Made by a program: the position numbers and the translations under genes. A stretch of 63,654 nucleotides of DNA, filler included, from Lenisia limosa (lineage: Eukaryota > Protista > Breviatea), in the NCBI GenBank assembly GCA_001655205.1. It is 9 parts of 9 records of this genome, joined end to end, with 100 filler letters (N's around TTAATTAATTAA, not from the genome) between each part and the next. Parts side by side here need not be neighbours in the genome. Positions count along the whole stretch, not along the records: positions 38,782 to 54,227 come from LPNZ01007125.1; 8 more parts are not named here. One strand, 5' to 3'. Position 1 is the first letter of the stretch. Each line of letters starts with the position of its first letter. The notes beneath the pieces were generated by a model, which was given only the letters and a program-made list of their open reading frames with translations, searched no databases and had not been told where the DNA came from. This document shows, in pieces, positions 38,782-54,517 of the stretch.

Positions 38782-40720
38782 GGCATGCGAGACTCTGCTT
38801 CGAGTGCTGTGCTTCTGCGGCTGAACTTGGCCAATGAAGCATAGTTAAAGACTTGTGGTTGTTGAGGGGGTTCAGATTGGTTTGGCAATGATGATGGAAC
38901 AACTGTGGGCACTTTATCTTTTAAAAAAAGACTTTTGTGCAGTAGAACAGCTACTACACTGCAGTGAGCCAGGTAAGGCAGAATTGTCGCATGCAGACGA
39001 CTGAGCTGGTTTCTCATCAGAGGGTGGCAATATCTCATGTCCACCTCGATTATGGGTCTTGCTCCAGGAAACATATTTCATTCGTGAGTGGCAGAGACCC
39101 ATGCATGGTGCCACAAGTTTTCCACCTGAGAGAGGAAAGGGGCTGAGTCCAAGCGCACTATCAGGCTCACAAGTTGTCTCGGTGTAGGTGGCAACAACCA
39201 AGCTGCGAGTGATGCCAACGCTCGGGGCTGCCGCACAGACACAGCCAAGTACGCCAGATGGCAAATGAAGAAAGGCTGTAGAATTAAATATTGTAAACAT
39301 GGTATAAAAACAAATATTATCATAGACAGTGACAAGGATAAGTCTTGTCTGATATTCTTGGAAAATTTTATTGCAAATCAGTCAAGACCAATTTTTATCC
39401 TATCACTGTAGAATATCGCACATGTGGCCGTTCAAAATTCTGGGTTTTTTCGCTAATTTTGCGTTTTCTCAAGCGAATCTGCTTTGTTGTCTCTCTTTTT
39501 TTATGATATTCGAGAAAAACAAGACTAAAATAGGTATAAATTGGGTTTATTTCGCCAAATTAGAAGTAAAATGATCTGGACTTTGATTGCCCTTCATTTT
39601 CGGGTTGATTTGTTCTTCTTCATTTCAAAAGTCGGTTTTAAATTCTAGTCAAGATACATAGAGGTCTAAATAATAAACCCAAATTTCAAACTTTGAATCC
39701 CTTTTGAAGCCTGTTTGTTGATCAGTAGGGATTCTGAGAACATATACTTGATAAAAATCACAAAAAATACTATTATTCAAAACATTAAAGAGAAAAAACC
39801 AGAATCAGTGTCAGTGAAAAATCAGAATTTTGAACGGCCGCATATATGTAAATATGCAGGGTCTTCATAATGTTGCCAATTAAAAATGTTGGAAATTATT
39901 AAAAGAGAAAGTCTACAGACCCAGAATCTTTAAAAGTAGTCATCTCATATAACATCACCTTGATAACAACATATCATATCATATCGTTAAAGCAGGGTTC
40001 CAACCCAGAAAATGGTCACAGATATCCGAACGGTGACGTCATTATTTACTACTTTCCCCTCAAATTTAACGAATAGTGTAGTCAACATCTTAGGAAAAAT
40101 CAATAATTGCTTTAATAAAACTAAACAAAATCACTCGGGTCTCTTTCAGTTATGTTTGTGATTAATCCGAGCCAGTTACTGGGTTGGCATTTGTTAGTCA
40201 CAATTTTATAATTAACACATGAGCATTTGATTTGAAATACCCCACCTACCAGACTATTCTAGATTCTGAGGCACACTTGATTGCTTTTTGATAGCCCTGG
40301 CAATTGCGGCCATATCTCCGCCCAAGTCTTTGACTGAAGGAAAAGCTATAGGATAAATTAGTCGCTCTATTGGAATGTCAAGACAAACCTTCGCATTTGC
40401 GAGAAGTGTCGCTTGCAATTATTACAAAGATAACAACCAGTCGTCAGGACCTTGAAAATGATTTCATGGGTTATTGTGAAGCCTCCGACCATTAGATGCA
40501 GCAATTTGCAAAGGTGGCTTGCCTTAGCTTCATTGGAAGCCAGTTGGTTACAGCCCCTATCGAACAAGGTACATTCCTAACAAAATTAATTGCTTGGGCA
40601 TATAAAATGTTCCTTTAAATTGGAAGCTCACTTGGATAGTTGTTCGAATTGCGGAAAGAATGCGCAAGGGCATCAACCAGAGATAGTGAAGGTGGGGGTT
40701 TTGGCATTTGGTCTTGCTGC
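38782..40720 (-). CDS. Hypothetical multi-exon gene, Cys/His-containing
   Basis: Exon-like blocks QQDQMPKPPPSLSLVDALAHSF, VLTTGCYLCNNCKRHFSQMR and long open frame 38914-39300; structure unresolved. Confidence 0.3.
39327..39408 (+). mobile_element. MITE family C copy
   Basis: CAGTGACAAGGATAAGTCTTGTCTGA...TCAGTCAAGACCAATTTTTATCCTATCACTG|TA. Confidence 0.75.
39421..39844 (+). mobile_element. Non-autonomous TIR element F (~425 bp)
   Basis: Left ATGTGGCCGTTCAAAATTCTGGGTTTTTTCGCT; right AGTGAAAAATCAGAATTTTGAACGGCCGCAT; no ORF. Confidence 0.7.
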
Positions 40721-41255
40721 TGTGTAATGAGAGATATTCAGATAGGAGAACCATAAAATGGGGATTTCAATCACACCCAGACTTATATATTAAAGCCGCA
40801 AAAAGTAAATTAATCAATTTTACCAGCTTACAGGAAATGAGCAAACATATATGAACAGCTACTCCCAAAAAACTTAAATACATCTAAACCCCCCATGTCT
40901 ACATTTCTCTCGATTTCGGAGTAACTCCAGGGTCACTCACCCCCCTGCACGTAATCGCGCTGGGGTTCAGAAATTTCAGGAATTCTGACCAAAAAAGATC
41001 GATATTCTGAGGTCCTCCTTGTGTCATTGAGTGATTCGTAGGTAGGGTTTACAACAGCTTGACCAGACCTCGTTAGGACCTTCAGGCGTCTTAATAGGGA
41101 GCTTCAGAAATCTGAAGATGGCTTAGCATCGCAGTTTGTCTTATGGTAATCCTGACAGTTTGACTTGCGAACCCCCCGCGACCGTTCCCAGAAATAAAAA
41201 TGGGAAAGTTTTTTAAAGCGAACATTTTAATTATCAGAGTAGATATATAATGAAC

Positions 41256-44182
41256 TTAGACCATAGGTCGCCCAATCATAAGAGGAGGAGCTGTTGTTGG
41301 TTCACAAATATTTCCCTCCCGATCGGGATACAAAAGATAGCGACCATACTTGAATGCATGTTCATCAGCATATCTACAAACAGCAGGGACCAAATTACAA
41401 TTACAAAAAACTAACCTTCACAGTGCCAGGATAATTCGGGTACATATGACAAGCTTGATAAGTGAGCTCCTGAAGATCTCTTGCAGTAATAACAGGAGGC
41501 AGATTATTGAAAAGAAGATCATAGTGAACGGGACGCGCAGTACCCTGTCCAAGATCACAAGGCTGCATAATAAAGTCAGTTAGGCAACTACTGTGAGGAC
41601 GAGTAATACCACCAGTTACAATAGTACCAGGTGGAGGATTCAAACCTCTATTAGTGAACATTCTGGTTCCTAATCGCTTTTGAACGATCATATATGCCAA
41701 TCTTGTATTGGGATTCAAATCAATAATTGCTTTTTTAACTGCCTCAATTTCGTTACCTTTCACCTCATCATATGACTGATCACCGACACCATCCCTATAA
41801 TAAATAATTGCCATTGGGAAAATCTTCGCCAATGAATGAAATTGCTTAAGAAGAGAAGTGACGGCCTCATGAGTGAATTTAGCTGAAATCTCCTGACGGC
41901 TTGGTAGAAGATATTGTCGAGCAGCAAAGAAAGCTCCATTTAACTTGTTTGGTACCTCACAAGTAAAAGCCATTGTTGACGGCCAAGATTCACCATTGGG
42001 ACCACGATACGATTTATGAGAAATGTCATGGTATACATCACAACCAATCATCATAACAACTCTGCTGTTATCTTTATCAAAAATATTAGCATTGTATCCT
42101 ATTTTCCAAAGAGAAGCACCCATTTTGACTTGCAGCCCAACAAATAAATTGGATGCCAGAACTTTCGGATAAGATCCTCCTTTTTGAACCCGCGGAGCAT
42201 GTTTCGAAGCAACAACAACTTGCTCGACAACATTATTTTCTAAACACCATCTGCAAACATCGGCATACACTTCCTCTTCTTCCCCATGTCTGACAATTAA
42301 ACAAGCAAGCTTCTTATTCATGTTTGTGCGTGCAGATTTTGACCACCTTTCAAGATTTTCCAACCAAAGTTTGCTATTGGTACCACCTGCAGCTGGTACG
42401 GACTGGGCTTGAATTTTAATTGTAATGTTTTGGTTTTTTCGTTGGCGCTGTTTATCACGAACCATTTCCTCAAAATTTTTAGCCATTGTCGAATAAAAGA
42501 TACAAGAAAAACCTGTGCGAAAGAGGAGGCTCTCTCATCAAATAAAACAAGACAAGGATCCATTGGTGACCCTTGGGTGATATCAAGGTCCCTCATTTGG
42601 GGCATCCATTTTGCTAAAACATCAAAGTGTTACAAGACAAACTTGAGTCATTCGAAACAGAGTCTCTAGCCAAATGAATTCGTTGACCAGGAATTTTATG
42701 GAATGGGACAATATCTGGAGACTGAGACACCGCCACTCCCCAGCGTTTTATTTCTTCCCCAGCAGATCGTTCTACTTTACCACCAGAAACAGAATTCATA
42801 ATTTCCATAAACATTTCAATGTACAAAAGTAAAAAATAATTACAAACTCTTATTCTAGAGGCCGGGGGTTCTGAAGTTAATTCATCCTTAATAGTGTCAT
42901 CTTGATCTCTAGGAAACCTCTTCATATTTGGAAATTCTAAGAGTTCAGCAGGAAACCATGCAATTTGCTTTTCACCACGAAATTCATTCTCAATGCCAAC
43001 AAGAGGAAGATCTTTATATACAATGGCGGTTCTCTAAAATTAACCAAGCAAAAAATAAATACTGCATAGCGCTTCTGAAAATATTCTCCAAATGTTCTCT
43101 CTGGTTCATCTGGTTTATCGGGTCTAGGAGGCATTTTTGTATTAATAGTTTTTGAAGGATCAATTTGAACAACCTTGCCAGAACCCTTTCTGTGCCCACA
43201 TTACCATAACACATAAAACCTGAAATCAACTTCCGTTCCAATTAAATTCTGGTAGTTCCCATTGCAAAGTCTGAGTTCATCTCCAAATGTATACCTCCTT
43301 CCCTACAAAATAAAGTAACATGACTATTTTCCATACCTCATTGTGTGTAGTAGGAGCAACTGAAAGCTTCCATCCATCCGCTTTTAGCAAAATGGATGGT
43401 CTCCAAGCTCTATGAACAATAAAGCAACCATCTGGGGTGGGGCATGTCATTGGATTGTTTAAAGAAAGATACTTCCTTCCATTTTTTTCAAGATCAGAAC
43501 ATAAATCAAGAGCATTATGAAGGATTCCATCAAGTAACATTTCACCTCGTTGTCTTTCATTCTCATCAGGGGAAGAAGCAATTTGATCCAACTAGAATAT
43601 AACAGTAAAATCCTTTCAAACCTTAACTTCCTCGGAGAATCTCACAGACATGTTAATTCTTGCCCCAACAGTTCGAGTAGTAGGGTCATATATTTCAACA
43701 GTGGTGGCTTCAAGTGGTGGCTGACGATTCAGAGATACAATCAAACTCCCATTAAAAAACATATCATCTGATTAATTCTGAGCAACAACCCCAAGGGACT
43801 TTGACCTCACCAAATGCCATTCTCATAGTTGATTTATATGCTTTGAGCCTTTCTCTTTGAAGTGTAATTCTTGAATTTGACTTGATTAAAATACAAAAAT
43901 AACAGGATATTCAAGAGTATATATATACAGCGAAGAATTGGGCTTTAATTGTACAGGATAGAAATTTGTGACAAGTTGATTGGCTTGAACATTTAAAGAT
44001 TTGAATTTTTCAGACAGTGCTGCAACAATTAATTAAAAGGATTCAAAAAAATATCACAAAAGCTTACGAACATTTCCTCCACCTCTTCCTCTTCCGCGAC
44101 CAGCTCCCCCACGACCACGGGGGGCTCCTCCTCGACCACGAAGTGCACCAGTTCCTCTAAATCCTCCTCTTCCTCTTTCCAT
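41256..44182 (-). CDS. AGO: Argonaute/PIWI protein, full length (RG-rich N-term, ArgoN, L1, PAZ, L2, MID, PIWI); about 11 short introns
   Basis: MERGRGGFRG...GRGRGRGG; LVTNFYPVQLKPNSSLYIYTLEYP; PAZ TFGEYFQKRY...DLPLV...WFPAELL; PIWI MMIGCDVYH, SRQEI, IYYRDGVG, IVQKR, NPPPGTIV, QGTARPVHY, LQELTYQACHMY, VPAVCRYAD; stop TAA at 41256-41258. Confidence 0.95.
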
Positions 44183-45879
44183 TATTTTAATAAACCAAAA
44201 GGAGAGCATACAAAAAACTTCACTTTAATATTCAGTTTTTTATAATTGTTTTCCTAACTATTAAACAAAATCTGCTGGGCCGTGACTTATCGTATGGCTG
44301 GATCACTGGATCATGGCTGGTATATCTTTCATATAGATATGAGAGGTTATGCAAAACGGTGTCTCGTACAACTCAGGGGAATCGCTCTTCGCCATTCTCC
44401 GCATCCGCCATGAATGTTCCGCCATCTGCCATGGATTTTCCACCATCCACCATCGTCTCCTATCACCCTATCGCATAACGGTATAACAGTCTCTCAACAG
44501 TCCAACCAAGAAGAAAGTGAAGGAAGCTTTTGAAAAAAATCAGGTATTTGTGTCAGTGAAGGCGATGAGCCAACAATTACAATTGACCCTTGGCAATTGA
44601 CAGAAGCTCTCCGAATTCTGATCATGCGTTTAAAGAGCTTCTTTTGAATCCTCCCCACTCTGCTCTCATAAACTGCAGAAGCTTTAAAAACACAGTTTAT
44701 CTGACCGATCTTATGGTATCTTGAAAATGAAGGTAAATTGCCATGTCATGGTAATCCACTGGTCGGAAAGAAAGTTTAAATGGCTATGAAGTTTGTAGAA
44801 AACCACGAAAATTGAAGAAAAGAAAAAAGAAATGTTTGAAAAAAAAAGGTAAATTTTCATTTTTACAACTTATTCAAAAGTTTTGAAGCAAAGAACAGCT
44901 ATGAAGACGAAGACAAAAACAATTCCTCGCTCTCATAAACGCTGGTTTTTGTGTTTTTACCTCTATGTTATGTTTTATATCTGCATGAATATACTTCTAA
45001 TTATTTTTTTGCAAAAAGGTGGGTTTTTTTTGATAATTTCTTTGAGATAAATCGTTGCTAATTCCCCTTTTGGATATTTTATCTAAAAAAAAAGGAAAAA
45101 AGGAAAAAGTGCCCACACTCATGTGCCTCCACTTATAATGTTATTATTATATTTTGCCAGATCAAATCCTCTTTCTCTTCCGTTTTCGAAAAATTATTCT
45201 GTTTTCATTTGGATCATTCTGTTTTCATTTGTATCCATTTTCATGGGTTTATACAACAATAATGTATACATGGCGTGCTCCTCTGGGGCCTTCATTGAAA
45301 GCATCCTGCTGATAAGATGGATATGGTGTTCCGCCATTTTCATCCAACGGGATTGAAATCCTCGCCACCCGTTGAACGCCACCGGACAACTACCGACTTC
45401 AAAGTTGCTGACGGAATAAATGTAAGACCTCTTGTCTTATTTTGTTTTTTTTGATAGTAACAATATTTAGGCTACCCAGAAGGTCACTCAAGGCAATATT
45501 ACAGGCTGCCACGTCGAGTCAATCTCTTTTATTATATCTCAGGTAAATGCGCTGGTGTAACTCCTCCTTGGCTTGGGAGTGTGTGGGACTCAGTCAATAG
45601 TGGAACTGGAAGAGATTGCCTGGAGAAATTAATATAAAAAGGGTAATAATAATATATCATATATACTATATTATACCATATCATAAAATTATTATATCTT
45701 ATTTATCATTAGCGAAATATTAAAACATAGGAAGTGTTTTGAAAATGAGAAGTCTCAAATGCAGAGTTTAGGAGAAATGTAATACTATTCAAGTTGCTCA
45801 AAAGAAAAATCATTGCAGTAACTCTCAACTACTATTCCCCTCAGTTCAACTTGAAGGAAATGCCTCTCTTATCTACTCT

Positions 45880-48800
45880 ATTACGTTTGCAATGACGATA
45901 AATGGAGGTAATGTCTGACCAACGTTTGAACTTGGGGCAATTCTTCAGGAAGAGAGGGTGTGTGTACGCTATAGTATTATTGTGTGAGGTTACGACTCAA
46001 TGGCTATTGAAGAACCAAAAACGAAAGAGAGTGAACTTAGCTTACAATAGGTTCCTGGTAACTAGGGTCATTTGTACTAAAAAAAAGGTAAAGTTTAGAA
46101 AATCTCGCATTCACGCATATTAGATGGTATCGTATGTCATATTATTCATTTCTGTCTGTAGCCGCAGCAAACCTGGGGAAGAAGCGGTTTTGAGAGCAGA
46201 GCTTGGAGTAACAATTTTAAGCACAACCTTCACTGCAGTTTGAAGGATACCGTTCATCCTCGCTCTCAGCCTCCTGTGAACGGACACCGGCGTAGAAGCC
46301 CAGCACGGGCTCGGTCACGTTGGCCTCATAGTCGGCGTTTAGGAGGTACCAAAGAGCAGTTTCTTGGTCCTCTCAGCCGAAGAAACTGAAGAATATTAAG
46401 ATTATTATTTTGAAGCGGATCCCATCCCGAAATAACTGCACATCAATCCCACGCCATAATCTCGTGAAAGAGCATCCGATGGGACTTGCGGTGGCTGAAG
46501 GCGCCTCCTCTGACATGATTAATCACTATCATGGAAATGATTTTAGTTGAGGTCGATTTGTTTTTTGGTCCACGAAGCAAAATAAAAACGAACGTCAGGA
46601 ACAACTTCCGATGATTGTGTATTATCTCATTCCAGCAGACCGAAAGCAATGGGGAGTCAGACGTGAATACTTGAGCTTCACCTTGGCCTCAGTAACAATG
46701 TCCTTGAAATGGCGGGAAAAGGTATCATAATCCAACGCTGATTCTTCAAACCTGTAGAATAATCATTCCGCAGCTTTGGCATATATGTACGTTACAAACA
46801 ATTTAATATGGTTTATTTATATCTATATATATGTGGGTCCTCAAAGCTCCGGACATCATTCAAAATTCCCGGACACATCAAAACTCCCGGACAGCTTGAA
46901 GTTAATGCCTTGTATAGGCTATTGCTAGTGTTTTTTGAAAATCTGTTTCGACAGATACAAAAAGTGGTACTCCTAATGTTCCCTAACTTTTTTTTTCAAT
47001 TTTGAGCAAACGTCAAAAATCCGTGAATTTGGTCTCCCGGGGGTCCCCCTTTTGCCTTTTCACAGGATTTTTTCTGAATCTTACCCTCTTTTAAGTGTTA
47101 AGAAACAAAAATTTGCACCCCTCGGAGTATTTGGTTCCGGGTTCCACTTTACGTTGGCAATGCAATGGTGAATTTTGAGAGAAAATTGCTCAAAATAGCA
47201 CTGTCTACAAGGGTAAACTTTGCGCCATTTATTCCTTGAATGTGGCCTTTTATAACGGTTTTTGCTTGTTTTTGACAGTATTTGGACCATTAACAGAGAG
47301 CTCAGGGACTTAATTTGGTTTTGACCCGACAATATGTTAAATTGGGGTTTCATGCTTTAATTAAGATTGAGATTACTTTCGAAAACAAAAGGGAAATAGG
47401 GTTTTTGGGTGGTTTATGGTGATTTTGTAGGGGAAAACTCAAGCTGTCCGGGAGTTTTGATGTGTCCAGGAATTTTGAATGATGTCCGGAGCTTTGACTA
47501 TACATACATACAATTATATGCATTGCATAAATGAGATAATACACAATGTAATAGTTAGTACTAGATGTGTAATTTGAACTCGTATTTCTGTTACACTCCT
47601 AGCTACTTGAACAGAAAGATAGAAATCTTGTTCTTTAGAGCTTCCAAAACATGAATATTGCAACATCGTACCCTGAGCGCCTCGTCGGCCCCGTCTTCTT
47701 GATGGCAATGAAAAGTGGTGCGGTGGAGGCAGTGGAGATGTGGTTGAGGTCGGCAGTGTTCTTCCAGGCTCGGAGTAGCCGCACGGAACATGTTGCCTCT
47801 TCTTCGTCCTCCCCTTTTACAAATTCGTAGCTTTTGTCTTGAGGGTTACGACTTGTCAGAAGCAGTCAAAATGAACATATTACCCAGTCTGGAGGTGGAC
47901 TTGGAGCACTTGAGATGAGCGCTCATATTTTCACCGTCCCAGGTAATACAGTCCCAAACCTGGCAGGTCATCTTTTTCTGGAATCAATTTTTTTTTGATT
48001 TAATACTGTCACGAGCCCTTTACCATCCGAAGAGAGTCGGTTCCAATTTGAAGACCTAGATGAAACAACCAAGAATAGAGAGCCCACGAAGTTAATTCGG
48101 TTAAAAAAATCAAAATACAATTAGACCACCATCCNNNNNNNNNNNNNNNNNNNNNNNNNNNNNNNNNNNNNNNNNNNNNNNNNNNNNNNNNNNNNNNNNN
48201 NNNNNNNNNNNNNNNNNNNNNNNNNNNNNNNNNNNNNNNNNNNNNNTTTCCTTGGCGTCTAGGTAAGCAATGATCTCAATAAAATCTTCATGGCGAAGAG
48301 CGTCGTACTGGAGAGGCTTTTTTCCATGTCGTCGCTATTATCGGTGAAATAAGCAAGTCTCAGGGAAGAGTATGGAAACTGAAAGAAGAACAAATTACTG
48401 AGAAGTACACATACCATGTTGCATATCAGTTTGGAGTCTACTACAGTTTAAAATCGAAATATACATATAACGCGAGTGTTTTGTGATGTGGAGCTTTTTA
48501 GAAAAAAGAGTATTGTATATCAGTCATATGGTTCATCACTCAAATAGAGCCTATAGCTACTGTTAAGGCCCCAATTACATCAGCACAATGGATGGCACTG
48601 AAGACACGTTGCACAACGGGGTTAGAGCATGGGCTCTTAATACAGAAGTTGTTTTGCTCGAAGTACCAATGGAATGCAGCAATGGTTCCGGAGATGGTGC
48701 TAGCCTTGATTGTAAACCAATGTACCCAAAATGCCGTGAATGAACATGTTCAGCTGCTTGAATATTCAAGAAATGCAATGGCACTAAGTATACCAGACCA

Positions 48801-49600
48801 CCCGTACCTTCAGCGGGTCGGAGTCGTCCTGGGGAACTCGTTTAAGCATGATCAAGTATATCAAAAGACGGACCGCGGACTCATAGTTTCCAAGTAGGTC
48901 TTTGACAGGAGGACGGTTCTCCAGGAACTCGGCTACTTCTTCGTTAGTGTCCAACTGGAGGCAACTGGCCAGCTCCTCGGACACCATAAGAGGCATCTCT
49001 CCAGCCATGGCGGCAAGGCCGTTTTCCACCTTCTTTGAGTAGGCTAGGCCATAAAAATATTGCTGAACACTTCAATCAAATAAGAGCCCCAACAAAAACA
49101 ATATTAAGTCACAAGGATAGAAGCTCACATCAAGAGTGGACTGAGCAAAGGAGTCATTTGTGAATCTACAAGCAAACCCGTTGAATGAGTCTGAGAACTG
49201 AACTGTTGGTTTGCTACTTAAATTAGGAGAATACAACACTTAAATGAACACAACAAGAATTTGGAATTGGGGGGGAACAAAAAATAATTAAAATATTTGT
49301 TCTTCATTAAGTTAAATAAGAACCCACTTCTCCTTTGAAGCTTTCGCCTGAATCCGACGACCAGCCTGGCGAGGGTGCATTGCGTTTTGATCCTGATACC
49401 TGATACGGGAAAAGTGATATGGGAAGGGGAAAGGTAGTAGCAATTCTCTACATCAAAACAGTACTCTACCAGATAAAGAGGGACCGTGTCGAGAGTTCAA
49501 AGTAGAGATGGTTCTCGATCTCTCGCCCGCCGCTCAGTTCACCCCCTTTCGCATCCCTTCTCACCTGCCGCTTGGCGTCTTTGAAAAGCACGTATGTTTT
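45880..49600 (-). CDS. Hypothetical multi-exon gene, possibly with ankyrin-like repeats
   Basis: Exons VLFKDAKRQ, IENHLYFELSTRSLFIW, ENGLAAMAGEMPLMVSEELASCLQL..., RHGKKPLQYDALRHEDFIEIIAYL, DLNHISTASTAPLFIAIKK, FEESALDYDTFSRHFKDIV; family uncertain. Confidence 0.35.
46841..47497 (+). mobile_element. Non-autonomous DNA transposon D (~657 bp) with 59-bp TIRs
   Basis: 46841-46899 TCAAAGCTCCGGACATCATTCAAAATTCCCGGACACATCAAAACTCCCGGACAGCTTGA is the reverse complement of 47439-47497 with 1 mismatch; no transposase ORF; intronic. Confidence 0.9.
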
Positions 49601-49869
49601 TGTTAACAGCAAGCTAGTTCACTTTAATTTTCAATGAATCAAAACCCCTTTCTCCTACCTCCCTGATCTAGTCGATCTGCCCAGGTTCCTACTACACTGG
49701 CTTTACCCAAAATCAACTGGTTAATTAGTTGTTAACCCACTATTATGAGCGAGAAGAAAACGTTGCTGAAGCAACCCAATATTTATTGCTTGCCAAGTCA
49801 ATCTGACTTCTGAAATCAGTAATGTCCAGTTATCTATCACTGTATCATACCCAGGGAATTGGTTTTCTA

Positions 49870-50688
49870 TTTGGACAGTTCAAGCATATGGCTTTATTGT
49901 GAAACTGAAACATTTGTTGATAGATGCTCTCTGGATGGAATATCGTTCCTGATGGTGAAATATCGGTGAGCTTGGAGAATTGGTTATTGTGCTCAGATAG
50001 ATTTCGCACCCCCATTTTCATTCTCTCAAGGATTTTGAACTGGCCACAATCCCATCAGCTTGCCAGGAGGTCTATCTCAAGATGGTGTGCGTTTATTTAA
50101 TGTTCCTCACTATGCAGCATATTGGAAACGTAGTTGCTGTCATAGCTTCTTAAAACTCTTGGGTACTCATCTTTGAAGACCGGCTTTTAAAAATTTACCA
50201 CCGTTAAATGTGAGCGTGGGCTGTATCTTGCTTTTCAATATGCGTGTTCCTCTTTACTTTCAATAATAACATCCAAAGGCAAAGGGCGGTCAAAGGTTGT
50301 TGAGTGATGGTGATGAGCTTACTCTACTTGTTTATTTCTGCTGTATCATTCTTTGACAAAAATAGGCGGAGGAGTTTTACAGTTCCACCTACCATGATCG
50401 TCCTTCGGTGAATTAGGCTTCATTGGACGGAATAAAGAACTGGATCTGACATTTGGGGTTTGTTGTGGGACATTTAGTGTTCCTGAGTCAGAAGCTGCAG
50501 CATTCAAAAGAATCATGGCCAAGCGTTTGAGGAAAGAAGCTGATAGCAACAAGAATCATCGAAAAGAAGCTAAGCAAGCTGAAGAACAAGAACAGATTGA
50601 GGAACCAGCTAATCGTGTCATTGGGGTGATACGACAAGACGACACCACTGGACAAGGCAGAGAAAGGGGTCGAGGAAGAGGAAAGTAA
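49870..50688 (+). CDS. Hypothetical gene, 3' exons
   Basis: Final open segment FGELGFIGRNKELDLTFGVCCGTFSVPESEAAAFKRIMAKRLRKEAD...GRGRGK*; upstream exon ISHPHFHSLKDFELATIPSACQEVYLKM. Confidence 0.35.
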
Positions 50689-52172
50689 TTTGTTTTGAAT
50701 GTTTTGATTTGAGTTACCCTGCCTGCTTTTCACTGTTGCATCTTTATTAACTCATAATATTCTTGAAAAGGGATCTTGAAAAAAGAAAAAGTGTAAATAT
50801 GATCGGATTCAGGTATATGATCGGGTTCAGGTGTACCAACTTATTATCATAGTCTGTACACTGATTATATGAATATATATTGTAATTATATACATAAGTC
50901 GTACCCCCTGAGTGCAAACACCAACCTGAGTGCGAAGAGAAACACCAAAAATGTCCCAATTTTAAGATTTACCAAAATGTACGCCTTGATCTCCTCTTTA
51001 AGAGTGAAGCATTGAAATAATATCGTATATTTTTGAACTGATATTTATATTTCCAATTTTTTGAGCAAGATTATGATCTTTTTTTTTTTTTCTTTTTTTT
51101 CTGTTTTTTAATTTAATAATTTCTGTTGCAATGACGCGTTGACTCTTTGTTGTTTTTTTTAAAATAACCCATCAAAAGTGGGCCACCGTCGAAACCGTGC
51201 GCAAGTACAAAGCCGGTCAGACTTTAAAAACACTGAGTATGGGCCTAAAATCGTCCTTGTGATAAAGCGAAGACGTTCTTGCCTCTTGAGCAACCTAGAG
51301 GCAAATAAGTAGAGTAAACGAGCAAAATATATGCCTCATGAGCCTGCGGAGGGGGTTTAACTTGTCTTGGTAGACCACTTCAAGAACATTTACGATGTGG
51401 TTTTTTGGCCTTCTTCTTTGTAGTTGAAAAATTATGGACCAGGAATGCAGTTTTTGTTTTCATACCCTCGTCGTTTCTTCCCGCTCACACTGACATCTTT
51501 ATGTTTCAGGTAGCTCACCACCTCCTTGGCTACCTCCCCAGCCTCACCAAGGGGAACAGGACTCACAACCAATTTTCTCCACGCCATGTACTTTTGGTAC
51601 TCTTTACACGCAGACTAAAAAGTAACAAGAATTTCTAATAGACTATGTTTACATGAAATTCTTTTTGGCCAAGGAGCTCTTCAATAGCATTTTGCCTCTG
51701 TTCCTCCCTATTTAGTTAGATTTTCGGTGGATAATTGAACAGTTCCATACCACATCAATGGGTTTATTATTATCAATCATTTGTGTGACTTGCCACTATT
51801 AAACTTAACTTGAACTTGAACTTAAATATAACCCTACAACCAGAAAGAAAAAACCCGTAGTTGTAGCTGAGAGATCAGAGATCTTGTTGCTTATATCGTA
51901 ATTGCGGTCATATTCTATGATGACTTTTATAAAATTTATACTTTTTTTTATATTCTAATCGATCAGGTCCGAAAGCAGCAGATGTGTCCAATTATATTCT
52001 TTGTTTCTGTGTATGACTCTGACTCTCTGATATCAATTTGTCAATTTGTTGATGAATATTTATGTTATGTTTCAGGCTACATTCAAATAAAGACCAGTAA
52101 ATATCAATATGTACCGGGTTTATTGAAATCTACATAATCAGTCTTGGGAAGTGGTGGTAAATACACTACATC

Positions 52173-53640
52173 TTAAAGAACTTGCACATGGGTACCACTT
52201 GGAGAATGAGCTTGAAGAAGTTTGATGACTTTCTTGAAGTCACTGAATCTGATAGAAGTAAATATAAGAATTTGGAAATGACAAAGCAGAAGAAGAAGAA
52301 ATGCAATACCAATACATAAGATGGCCAAAAAATCTAATTGAAAACTCCCATGCGATTTGTAAGAAGAATAACAATTTCTCAGAATACTCCTGTTCTTATT
52401 TTTGCAACAGTGCATAAAAAACATGACCTCAAAAAATCGTGACAAAGTGCGTGGTACACGCCACCCCACACCCTTGGTGACAAAATATGCGATCGACTTT
52501 GGCAAACACTCTCCATTTCCTCCCCGCTGTTTCGGCAACACCACCAACTAAGACTCGGTTATGCTGATCAATAAACCAGTCATACAGGTTCAGAAAAGGC
52601 GACTGAGTTGGCGAAGACTTTCACTGTCTTAATGGATGCAACAGGTCAGGTCGAACATTAGCACGAGTATCGGCTAAAAAATCATTTCATGATTTTTATT
52701 CCCAAAGCTTGATAAACAAATAGTAAATTCAAAAATCTGAGACAACTCTTTATTAAGTTTAATTTTCATGATGGCGAACAGGACCGCCTAGTTGATGTAT
52801 TTTGTAAATCCGTTTCGGCGGAAGAGGCCATGTCAAGACGCTCCCGCATGTGACAATCCTCGCTTATTGTGACTTTGTATAAGGTTGGTGACCGCGGTGG
52901 CGAATTCTGCCGCGTCAAGCTCCCCATTCTTGTTCAGCTCGGCAACCAGTTTTGCGGAAAAAAATTCCTCAGCCTTGGGGACCGACTGGTGGTCACTCAG
53001 GAAGTAAGCTGTTGTTGTCAGTGGGGTCTTTCCAGCATTCGCAACTGCCTTCCACGCAGGAAAAAAGAACCTCTTCCCTCGAAACCAAAAAACGACATCT
53101 CTTAAATAAGTGGATTACGTCTTGAATTNNNNNNNNNNTACTAATTTGTTGATTTGAATAAAAGGAGACACAAGAACGGGCAGTTGAAACACCTCCTTTT
53201 ATATTTCAAAACTTGTTTTTACCGAAGGGTAGGACGGCACCGTTTTACAATCCGAGCAGGATTCTTGAGGTCCACAATCAAAGTTATCAGAAAGGTCAAC
53301 CTCACTTTGGGTGATAAGGCCATACTTGATCGATAACATAGCCCAATCATTGAATAGACGCGACACTTTGTCAGTCATGAATTCTTTACACCATACCACT
53401 CTAAGAGCTTCTGCTGAGTCCGATGAGTTGCAAAAATGACCAACCACTCTCTCACCATTCAGTTGCGACTTGATTCAGAGCAGACTACTGTCAATCTCGG
53501 AGGGCACTCACAATGTCTTCTTTAATAGGAGGTGATAGCTCGTTTGCCACTTCCGCAAGAGAGCAATTTTTGGTCAGGTCCCATTACCTGTCATCATCTG
53601 TTTGGAGTAGTGACGACGACAGGGTGTAGTACGGGCTGGA
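52173..53640 (-). CDS. Hypothetical multi-exon gene with one EF-hand-like loop
   Basis: KAEEFFSAKLVAELNKNGELDAAEFATAVTNLIQ; EALRVVWCKEFMTDKVSRLFNDWAM; last exon FSDFKKVIKLLQAHSPSGTHVQVL*. Confidence 0.35.
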
Positions 53641-53958
53641 CGTTAGAATCAAACTTGTGGGCTGTCACAATTGGAGGGTAAAAAANNNNNNNNNNNNNNN
53701 NNNNNNNNNNNNNNNNNNNNNNNNNNNNNNNNNNNNNNNNNNNNNNNNNNNNNNNNNNNNNNNNNNNNNNNNNNNNNNNNNNNNNNNNNNNNNNNNNNNN
53801 NNNNNNNNNNNNNNNNNNNNNNNNNNNNNNNNNNNNNNNNNNNNNNNNNNNNNNNNNNNNNNNNNNNNNNNNNNNNNNNNNNNNNNNNNNNNNNNNNNNN
53901 NNNNNNNTTGCTGAGATGCTCTTTGCAAGATACATTAGTACACAATACCAACAACAAA

Positions 53959-54005
53959 TCCTCGAGGAAGGCCCAAGTTTTGTCGTATTCGGCCTTCCTC
54001 GAGGA
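53959..54005. repeat. Perfect 15-bp inverted repeat with 17-nt loop
   Basis: TCCTCGAGGAAGGCC (53959-53973) / GGCCTTCCTCGAGGA (53991-54005). Confidence 0.95.
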
Positions 54006-54517
54006 CTGCTTGGATGAGTTGTGATGTATTATATAATCAATCAAGCAACAAAGATAGGAGGATATGTTCATCAATGAATCAAACATTGTGAAATAAAAAT
54101 AGTAATAATAGTTTTTTTTCAATATTCTTTGTTTTTGTTTTTTTTTTCTCAAACTATTATTACTATTTTGCATTCATTATTTTTTATACATTGGCTATTT
54201 AGATTTTCGAAGCTTAATTTTTACTTTNNNNNNNNNNNNNNNNNNNNNNNNNNNNNNNNNNNNNNNNNNNNTTAATTAATTAANNNNNNNNNNNNNNNNN
54301 NNNNNNNNNNNNNNNNNNNNNNNNNNNAAATAACAACTACAAGCTATATACTACTATGTATATTACAATACTATGTATATTTATGGTATATAATATGGAT
54401 AATGGAAATTCCCAAAAAGGGTACAAAAACCTGGTTCACCACAAAACAGACAACTTTCTTGAAACGTCTTCATAAATTGTGCAAAAAAAAAACCGAAGAT
54501 ACGATTATCCCTCCTAC

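Follow-up and report, generated by a model that had tools for sequence, protein, structure and literature searches.

A remodelled guide 5'-end pocket in a PIWI-like Argonaute from Lenisia limosa, a breviate

Introduction

The YKQK quartet by which Argonautes hold the 5' end of their guide is treated as near-universal, from archaeal Piwi to human AGO2 (hAGO2), and in hAGO2 the phosphate site consists of K533, K566, K570 and R812 together with the C-terminal carboxylate (PMC5389677). PIWI proteins have a Gln at the position of K566 that coordinates a metal ion, this residue being Q645 in Siwi and Q589 in Drosophila Piwi (PMC7015924). The only well-known lineage-wide exception to the signature is the HKQK of the nematode WAGOs, the 5'-end selectivity of which is still an open question (PMC12908457). 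Those proteins belong to a different clade, many members of which have no catalytic residues. A further case, prokaryotic and CRISPR-associated, is the Argonaute of Marinitoga piezophila (MpAgo), which reportedly has neither the charged quartet as a whole nor the metal.

Here we describe a PIWI-like Argonaute from Lenisia limosa that provides a second natural exception, in which a Lys and not the Tyr is replaced and in which the metal ligand, the residue at the R812 site and the C-terminal plug have changed too. This also documents the PIWI-like kind of Argonaute for Breviatea, the group that branches deepest in Obazoa, and bears on the history of the PIWI clade before animals. Our literature search turned up no paper that dealt with Argonaute in Pygsuia, Lenisia or Breviatea, and none of relevance on Dicer in Pygsuia or Lenisia. 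The protein amounts to a natural experiment in the rebuilding of the pocket and in the interchangeability of its charges; if its guides carry an ordinary 5'-monophosphate, it would do little more than illustrate compensatory evolution neatly.

Gene structure and expression

The window analysed here is a stretch of 63,654 nucleotides, joined from nine parts of the L. limosa genome, and the whole Argonaute gene lies on its minus strand at 41256..44182, with 12 exons and a predicted product of about 871 residues. The Trinity proteins of L. limosa in EukProt matched the genomic sequence exactly, and our exon model from 43826 to 41256 reproduced one of them, P0008, without deviation, thereby confirming 10 exons with the ORF intact throughout. 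One large exon (41416..42489, minus strand; residues 375-733 of P0008) encodes the last part of MID and the bulk of PIWI. The last intron (41391..41415, minus strand) is only 25 nt long and could be placed only as GT..TG, being one of four introns in the gene without AG; the literature search found no paper on breviate intron rules.

Likeness to the N-terminus of the Pygsuia orthologue, GT..AG introns and an ORF in the right frame are the basis for predicting a 5' extension (44182-43827). Its putative exon 1 (44068..44182, minus strand; 38 codons), outside the coverage of the Trinity ORF, would encode the initiator Met and an RGG/RG-rich N-terminus, and an RGG run of like kind opens the Pygsuia protein, P0010. 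In the PIWI clade such N-terminal RG/RGG repeats serve as methyl-arginine sites to which Tudor proteins bind, but some AGO-clade proteins also carry RGG tails. Predicted exons 2 (44019-43904) and 3 (from 43880), which span 43880..44019 on the minus strand and begin the N domain, have a 23-nt intron between them and lead in frame into the Trinity ORF starting at 43826.

The Argonaute locus was present in just two public sequencing runs, one of polyA RNA and one of DNA. The RNA run, X1, contained 0.77 of the words sampled from the gene, which together with the spliced Trinity proteins is what the expression call rests on; contigs placed against the gene came from the DNA run and none from X1, the DNA contig showing 0 differences from the stretch. 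The Argonaute gene is intact, and it is both transcribed and spliced. Within the examined piece there were no tRNAs, no Rfam matches and, for 10 further ORFs, no Pfam matches above threshold.

Domains, fold and placement among Argonautes

Pfam assigned the Piwi domain (PF02171) to residues 439-749 of P0008 with an E value of 6.4e-47, and to the ORF 41401-42486 of the large exon with 4.6e-41. The PAZ domain (PF02170) barely passed, its score of 30.0 bits lying just above the cut-off of 28.8, with 8 of the 12 highly conserved columns in its region altered, and ArgoN, ArgoL1 and ArgoMid gave no Pfam match in the protein. An AF2 model (pLDDT 87.5, pTM 0.86) predicts the bilobed Argonaute fold. Foldseek aligned it over the full length with PIWI and AGO structures at E values of 1e-43 to 1e-37, the top matches being, in order, MILI, EfPiwi, HILI, Siwi and then hAGO2. 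Alignment identified the catalytic residues as Asp525 (42037..42039), E574 (41892-41890), D607 (41793-41791) and D741 (41366-41364), all encoded on the minus strand, i.e. a DEDD tetrad that agrees with the DEDX pattern, and most invariant RNA-backbone and PIWI residues were also retained.

In our tree the split between AGO and PIWI proteins had an SH-aLRT of 100 and the protein fell on the PIWI side, this being a quick tree with long branches in which placement within the PIWI side is uncertain. HMMER, the tree and Foldseek all show that the protein is PIWI-like and not AGO-like. Its best matches in both sequence and fold are the animal PIWIs (Siwi 5guh, Drosophila Piwi 6kr6, EfPiwi 7kx7 and MILI/HILI), with which it shares the PAZ-MID-PIWI arrangement, a Cys at position 456 and the pocket Tyr, Gln and second Lys, and by prediction also an RG/RGG N-terminus. 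Unlike them, it has Cys for the pocket Lys, Gly for the metal-ligand Gln, a basic residue where hAGO2 has R812, a tail other than L-[FY]-[YF]-L, a very divergent PAZ and, as fourth catalytic residue, Asp instead of His. PIWI-clade proteins are characterised by binding piRNAs that are Dicer-independent and 3'-2'-O-methylated, but in a host that is a unicellular protist the placement does not imply a piRNA pathway of the germline. The likeness to hAGO2 consists of the same fold (TM about 0.6), the basic residue that occupies the R812 site in the PIWI helix and, probably, a metal-independent pocket, but the two proteins stand on opposite sides of the AGO/PIWI split and the K533 and K566 of hAGO2 are absent here.

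Residues of the 5'-end pocket

A preliminary description of this DNA had proposed an Argonaute MID pocket at 42118-42267, and the minus-strand translation of 41401-42486 indeed contained the strings that it quoted. As read from translation and alignments, the 5'-end pocket segment (42118..42267, minus strand) runs from Y449 to about residue 498. For residue mapping we used a HMMER alignment against EfPiwi and two MAFFT alignments; the longer EfPiwi alignment was needed because the MID segment alone (P0008:400-560) had given only a single chance match among PDB sequences, to a PHD finger, which was discarded.

All codons given in this section come from the exon model reproducing P0008 and lie on the minus strand. 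Cys453 (TGC, 42253..42255) aligned with the Lys of the Y-x-x-x-K helix, the YKQK Lys that is K533 in hAGO2, and Gly492 (GGG, 42136..42138) stood four residues before the invariant Lys, at the site of hAGO2 K566 and of the metal ligand Q645 in Siwi (PMC7015924), where a Gln would be expected. The alignment was gap-free, and the i/i+4 spacing equalled that of Y529/K533 and K566/K570 in hAGO2. Retained were Y449 (TAT, 42267-42265), Gln464 (CAA, 42220..42222), which is the Gln of YKQK and Q545 in hAGO2, and Lys496 (AAA, 42124..42126), the second Lys of YKQK and K570 in hAGO2. The replacement of K533 by Cys and of K566 by Gly with Y, Q and K570 kept, as had been claimed, was thereby borne out by both HMMER and MAFFT. 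Because the protein is PIWI-like, what had been taken for a loss of K566 is really the loss of a metal-ligand Gln. With a quartet of Y449-C453-Q464-K496 the YKQK signature is broken, and by homology the protein nonetheless remains a member of the Argonaute family.

Cys453 forms a C-R-W-C motif with Cys456 (42244..42246) on one helix, modelled by AF2 as residues 445-458. Between Gln464 and the pocket helix, alignments revealed a breviate-specific insertion of 4-5 residues (about residues 469-483; 42163..42207), predicted to form a helix at 468-476, of which His471 and Arg474 are retained in Pygsuia.

Two further sites set the pocket apart. The MAFFT column for hAGO2 R812 had to be discarded owing to a one-residue gap shift in the AGO-clade rows, and the site was instead read by ungapped helix offset from the conserved Ala740, which gave Lys746 (AAG, 41349..41351) as a candidate compensating charge. 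The C-terminal tail, R773-P-M-V776 (41259..41270), when compared from the protein end, takes the place of the hydrophobic plug L-[FY]-[YF]-L of the family, the carboxylate of which closes the pocket in PIWI proteins, the corresponding residues in Pygsuia being R-G-M-L; residues 768-776 had a pLDDT below 50 in the AF2 model.

Conservation among relatives

In a comparison set of 194 full-length relatives, the pocket Tyr and the Lys of the 496 column were each found in 194/194 and the Gln of the 464 column in 193. Position 453 was Lys in 189 of the proteins, Cys in two, Arg in two and Glu in one, and position 492 was occupied by Gln (175), Lys (13), Ala (3) or Gly (2). Cys453 and Gly492 occurred only in the Lenisia protein and its orthologue from Pygsuia biforma. 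These two orthologues are 42% identical overall and 63% over residues 449-502, the best conserved window of the protein being 721-750 with 77% identity, and the motifs Y..VCRWC, FVGLQ.K and HAFKYGR are the same in both.

Taking positions 453, 492 and 746 together, the PIWI-type pattern was K-Q-nonbasic (n = 173) and the AGO-type pattern K-K-R (n = 12, i.e. all AGO-clade proteins of the set), with the breviates having C-G-K. A basic residue at 746 was seen among PIWI-like proteins only where Lys453 had been lost, which had occurred in two independent lineages. The other is represented by P0233 (run SRR23086387), an unrelated protein only 22% identical that has E-Q-K at the three positions and likewise a non-canonical tail; it differs from the Lenisia protein in retaining Gln492 and His741. 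In the end-anchored comparison of all 194 tails, L-[FY]-[YF]-L had become R-[PG]-M-[VL] in the breviates.

Both breviates deviated at 16 of 67 highly conserved columns, with 7 of 49 in MID-PIWI, and because the lineage is divergent throughout, the two changed columns among the five of the pocket were not significantly enriched over lineage divergence (hypergeometric P about 0.14). What gives the finding its weight is that the two genera have the same residues and that position 746 and the tail have changed in correlation with them. The changes at 453, 492, 746 and the C-terminal tail look concerted, and as judged by these comparisons the remodelled pocket is a real lineage-specific variant shared by Lenisia and Pygsuia.

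Possible functions of the remodelled pocket

The reading that we consider most likely, giving it about an even chance of being correct, is that of a compensated pocket still anchoring a 5'-phosphorylated guide. The pocket was apparently rebuilt as a set in the lineage ancestral to Lenisia and Pygsuia, with the universal Lys of YKQK going to Cys, the PIWI-type metal-ligand Gln to Gly and the hydrophobic C-terminal plug to R-[PG]-M-[VL], and with a new Lys arising in the PIWI-domain helix, in the place of the phosphate-binding Arg of the AGO clade (hAGO2 R812). In such a protein Tyr449 would stack the first base of the guide, and its phosphate would be gripped by Gln464, Lys496 and the relocated Lys746, perhaps together with Arg454 or Arg773, the Gln-bound metal ion of animal PIWIs probably being absent. 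The enzyme would act as a slicer loaded with a small guide RNA having a phosphorylated 5' end. While gene identity, residue states, conservation and covariation were shown here, we infer a reach of Lys746 to the phosphate, a loss of the metal and a guide that is 5'-monophosphorylated. Against such compensation, the covariation spans two lineages only, the pocket has less net positive charge than that of the AGO clade with its four basic groups or that of PIWIs with two Lys and a divalent ion, and YKQK mutations abolish loading in canonical Argonautes, according to a review (PMC12908457). The preliminary description had itself raised the prospect of nearby basic residues taking over, and at sequence level a candidate did emerge in Lys746, which it had not listed; of those that it had, R79 (R454 in P0008) is conserved in Pygsuia but K95 (K470) and K108 (K483) are not.

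The pocket might instead have altered its 5'-end chemistry, as was first suggested, so that, enlarged and partly neutralised by the removal of the Lys453 and Gln492 side chains, it could take a 5'-triphosphate from unprocessed RdRP products, a cap-like group or a 5'-OH, within a non-standard small-RNA pathway of breviates. That suggestion was a fair inference from a non-canonical pocket kept in a second genus within an otherwise functional-looking protein, but its hAGO2 frame proved only half apt for a PIWI-like protein. Both genera share the changes at two of the five classical pocket positions and in the C-terminal plug, and going from Lys to Cys takes about three nucleotide changes, hence is no trivial slip. 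There is also precedent for pocket variants that follow 5' chemistry, in that WAGOs with HKQK bind 5'-ppp 22G RNAs (PMC12908457) and that in Entamoeba a Piwi-related protein is the partner of 5'-polyphosphate RNAs (PMC2582682). An Entamoeba Ago paper gave no information on MID pocket residues. The WAGOs resemble the present case in that an otherwise intact Argonaute departs from YKQK throughout a lineage and in a conserved way, which for them has been proposed to reflect the 5' chemistry of the guide (PMC12908457), but they retain every Lys and change the Tyr alone, so that the HKQK pattern is not found here (Tyr449 is present and Lys453 absent) and a loss of Lys is not what the precedent predicts. 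A triphosphate would moreover demand more positive charge and not less, and the gain of Lys746 resembles compensation. The analogy drawn earlier to the 5'-OH pocket of MpAgo turned out weak: both pockets are less charged than the canonical one, but Tyr, Gln and Lys496 are present here while MpAgo is said to lack the whole quartet. Altered chemistry is the chief rival to compensation, though less likely than not. Somewhat bolder is the notion of a third eukaryotic pocket design, distinct from both the Lys-rich AGO type and the Gln-plus-metal PIWI type, in which Y-C-Q-G-K with a relocated Lys and an Arg-containing tail would select non-monophosphate 5' ends, e.g. triphosphate or capped, or would be loaded depending on a thiol-bound metal or redox state; this we put forward tentatively and regard as rather unlikely.

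That the thiols themselves are at work, with Cys453 and Cys456, and possibly the breviate-specific His743 or His471, binding a soft metal or acting as a redox switch that gates guide binding in strict anaerobes, would suit the anoxic habitats of breviates (preprint 10.64898/2026.01.29.702055), the C-x-x-C and both His residues being conserved in the two genera, as well as the metal dependence of PIWI pockets, a site that in crystallised Drosophila Piwi can be taken by Zn (PMC7015924). Cys456 is, however, a common Cys of the PIWI family, found in 127/194 relatives, which leaves a single new Cys, and with no known precedent among Argonautes the proposal is speculative, drawn from sequence alone and in our view quite improbable. 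Less probable still would be a decayed pocket that anchors no guide 5' end, in a guide-independent or degenerate Argonaute or a gene heading for loss. The divergence of the lineage, the marginal PAZ domain and the lack of statistical enrichment of pocket changes over background agree with decay, but it is at variance with an expressed ORF intact over 10 confirmed exons, with the retained DEDD tetrad and most invariant PIWI residues, and with a pocket segment that is better conserved between the genera (63%) than the protein average (42%) and has the same Cys and Gly in both. An artefact of sequencing, assembly, contamination or misalignment is effectively refuted, since the genome and an independent Trinity transcript protein share the Cys, the DNA-run contig is free of differences, Pygsuia has the same residues in an independent data set, and the alignment is ungapped over both helices and anchored by the invariant Tyr and Lys.

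Nearest relatives outside the breviates

After Pygsuia, the nearest relative of the Lenisia protein was P0101 from 'Eukaryota sp. TZLM1-RC' (E 2e-52, 31% identical), which together with P0105 from the same source clustered with the breviate pair in the tree. Both proteins retain Lys453, and at position 492 there is Gln in P0101 and Ala in P0105.

The Argonaute gene and its products

The open frame of 361 codons at 41401-42486 on the minus strand, in the translation of which the strings quoted in the preliminary description were found, matched the Pfam Piwi domain (E 4.6e-41) and proved to be a single exon within a larger gene. A word search gave exact matches to two Trinity-derived proteins of EukProt EP01086 (the breviate protist Lenisia limosa), P0008, of 776 aa, whose numbering is used here, and P0001, a truncated isoform of 563 aa. 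Mapped onto the window, P0008 comprised ten exons from 43826 to 41256 on the minus strand with nine introns of 22-34 nt, and scripted joining of these exons reproduced P0008 with every residue identical. A contig from the DNA run had no differences from the stretch, and a fraction of 0.77 of the sampled locus words was present in a polyA RNA-seq run of the same study.

The database ORF of P0008 begins at an internal Met and the genome supports about 95 extra N-terminal residues (44182-43827, minus strand), with an RGG/RG-rich first exon as in Pygsuia biforma, so that the 5' end is probably missing from the public protein model. Because the predicted RGG-rich exon (44182-44068, minus strand, in-frame ATG at 44182) and two further predicted exons are in frame with the Trinity ORF and similar to the N-terminal part of the Pygsuia protein, the full product would probably have about 871 aa. 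P0001 departs from P0008 after residue 556 (about 41945, minus strand), within the large exon past ...CEVPNK, and stops seven residues on; it would be without most of the PIWI domain and could stem from alternative splicing or an assembly artefact.

Placement among PIWI-like Argonautes

In Pfam searches the PAZ domain of P0008 barely passed (30.0 bits versus a cut-off of 28.8) and the Piwi domain gave an E of 6.4e-47. The top PDB sequence matches were of the PIWI clade, with EfPiwi (2e-21) followed by MILI and Siwi and with hAGO2 behind at 1e-16, and database relatives other than the Pygsuia orthologue (P0010, EukProt EP00033) were overwhelmingly animal Piwi, Aub and Ago3 proteins of about 30% identity. 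Using a confident AlphaFold2 model (81 sequences, pLDDT 87.5, pTM 0.86), the ten best Foldseek matches were all PIWI structures, with hAGO2 close behind. The catalytic positions D525, E574, D607 and D741 form a DEDD tetrad. When a maximum-likelihood tree was built from the MID-PIWI region, the split between AGO and PIWI proteins (support 100) left the Lenisia-Pygsuia pair (support 100, on a long stem) with the PIWIs, among long-branched protist PIWI-likes including two 'Eukaryota sp. TZLM1-RC' proteins, an inner position that in this quick tree could reflect long-branch attraction.

The PAZ domain (about residues 165-260; 43302-42848, minus strand) was much more divergent than MID-PIWI, both breviates being altered at 8 of 12 highly conserved columns; among these, two Tyr conserved in the family are replaced by His175 and by Gly/Ala180, and a Phe by Met195. 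Given this divergence, the 3'-end pocket may be non-canonical as well.

Residues of the 5'-end pocket

The preliminary description had reported, by comparison with hAGO2, a MID pocket at 42118-42267 lacking two Lys that bind the guide 5' phosphate. An alignment of 194 full-length relatives confirmed both this observation and the residue mapping. Position 449 (hAGO2 Y529) was Tyr and position 496 (K570) Lys in all 194 sequences, and position 464 (Q545) was Gln in 193, the breviates having Tyr, Lys and Gln, respectively. At position 453 (K533) there were 189 Lys, two Arg (both in protist PIWI-likes), one Glu and the two Cys of the breviates, and at position 492 (K566) 175 Gln, 13 Lys (all in AGO-clade proteins), three Ala and the two breviate Gly; only Lenisia and Pygsuia combine Cys453 with Gly492. 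As a reference frame hAGO2 was thus only half apt, since in PIWIs the K566 site is occupied by Gln, which shares the coordination of a divalent metal with phosphates 1 and 3 and with the carboxylate of the C-terminus, the AGO clade having Lys in its place (PMC7015924). The Lys of the Tyr-Lys-Gln-Lys (YKQK) quartet counts as universal (PMC12908457). As judged from the alignment, what the breviates have lost is this universal Lys and the PIWI metal ligand. Cys453 is a derived state, because all outgroups have Lys, and the change takes about three nucleotide substitutions, for example via Arg and Ser.

Just before the stacking Tyr (residues 443-448; 42268-42285, minus strand), Lenisia has a strongly acidic G-E-E-E-E-V and Pygsuia T-Q-E-T-P, in a loop that is mostly basic or neutral in animal PIWIs and that confers nucleotide specificity in other Argonautes.

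Apparently concerted changes around the pocket

The Pygsuia orthologue was 42% identical overall to the Lenisia protein, with 63% identity over residues 449-502, and shared the Y..VCRWC and FVGLQ.K motifs; the highest identity of the protein (77%) was found in the 721-750 window, which holds Lys746. This Lys and the C-terminal tail are two other pocket components in which both genera depart alike from the family norm. In hAGO2, the 5'-phosphate site is made up in part by R812, its other members being K533, K566, K570 and the carboxylate of A859 (PMC5389677). The corresponding residue is Lys746 in both breviates, as counted along the ungapped helix from the conserved Ala740, the MAFFT column having been rejected because the AGO sequences carried a spurious gap there. 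Across positions 453, 492 and 746, the patterns were K-Q-nonbasic (PIWI type) in 173 sequences, K-K-R (AGO clade) in 12, C-G-K in the two breviates, R-Q-T in two and E-Q-K in one, P0233, a PIWI-like protein from the Logan assembly of SRR23086387 that is unrelated (22% identical to the Lenisia protein). Among PIWI-likes a basic residue at 746 thus occurs only where Lys453 is lost, in two independent lineages. Compared from the C-terminus, the family ends in L-x-x-[RK]-L-[FY]-[YF]-L and the breviates in G/S-R-P/G-M-V/L; the pLDDT of this tail (768-776) was below 50. Arg454, Trp455, His471, Arg474 and His743, all near pocket elements, are breviate-specific and conserved in both.

P0233 is encoded by an intronless gene (357-2669 of its Logan contig) adjoining a protein kinase gene. 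Its pocket Lys is replaced by Glu, the site of hAGO2 R812 is occupied by Lys and the C-terminal tail is non-canonical, so that this protein departs from YKQK independently of the breviates.

Possible function of the altered pocket

The whole lineage is divergent: at columns at least 85% conserved among the other 192 sequences, both breviates differed at 16 of 67, and at 7 of 49 within MID-PIWI, so that changes in two of five pocket columns were not a significant excess over this background (P ~0.14). The argument for a meaningful remodelling of the pocket rests on the same derived states in two genera, on better-than-average conservation of the segment, on covariation of position 746 and the tail, and on the parallel in P0233.

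We favour, with about an even chance of its being correct, a compensated pocket, in which the first base would be stacked by Tyr449 and a phosphorylated 5' end held by Gln464, Lys496 and a relocated Lys746, with Arg454 or Arg773 as possible further contacts. As in the AGO clade, the pocket would probably do without the metal that Gln binds in animal PIWIs, and targets would be sliced by the DEDD site. The main rival is the original proposal that an enlarged, less basic pocket picks another 5' chemistry, which we regard as possible but doubtful: nematode WAGOs, with their HKQK pocket and 5'-triphosphate 22G RNAs, are a precedent for pocket variants tracking 5' chemistry, but they keep every pocket Lys whereas the breviates have lost Lys453, and for a triphosphate one would expect extra rather than reduced positive charge. 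The earlier interpretation is supported in part.

Cys453 and Cys456 might form a thiol-based metal or redox site, a speculative and improbable reading given that only Cys453 is new, Cys456 being common in the family (127/194). The gene is intact and expressed and the Pygsuia data are independent, which makes a decayed pocket still less probable and an artefact highly improbable.

Introns and surroundings

The regions flanking the gene (38782-41200 and 44300-54227) held short ORFs only, as expected of a genome rich in tiny introns; ten such ORFs gave no Pfam match above threshold, and neither a tRNA nor an Rfam match was found in these regions. A literature search for breviate splice-site rules found no paper. 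For four of the nine transcript-supported introns, with boundaries deduced from the transcript-derived protein and not from transcript nucleotides, no protein-preserving GT..AG placement was possible; on the minus strand these were 43219-43196 (GT..GG, 24 nt), 42847-42824 (GT..TG, 24 nt), 42512-42490 (GT..CG, 23 nt) and 41415-41391 (GT..TG, 25 nt). The remaining five were GT..AG introns of 22-34 nt, and G was the final nucleotide in all nine.
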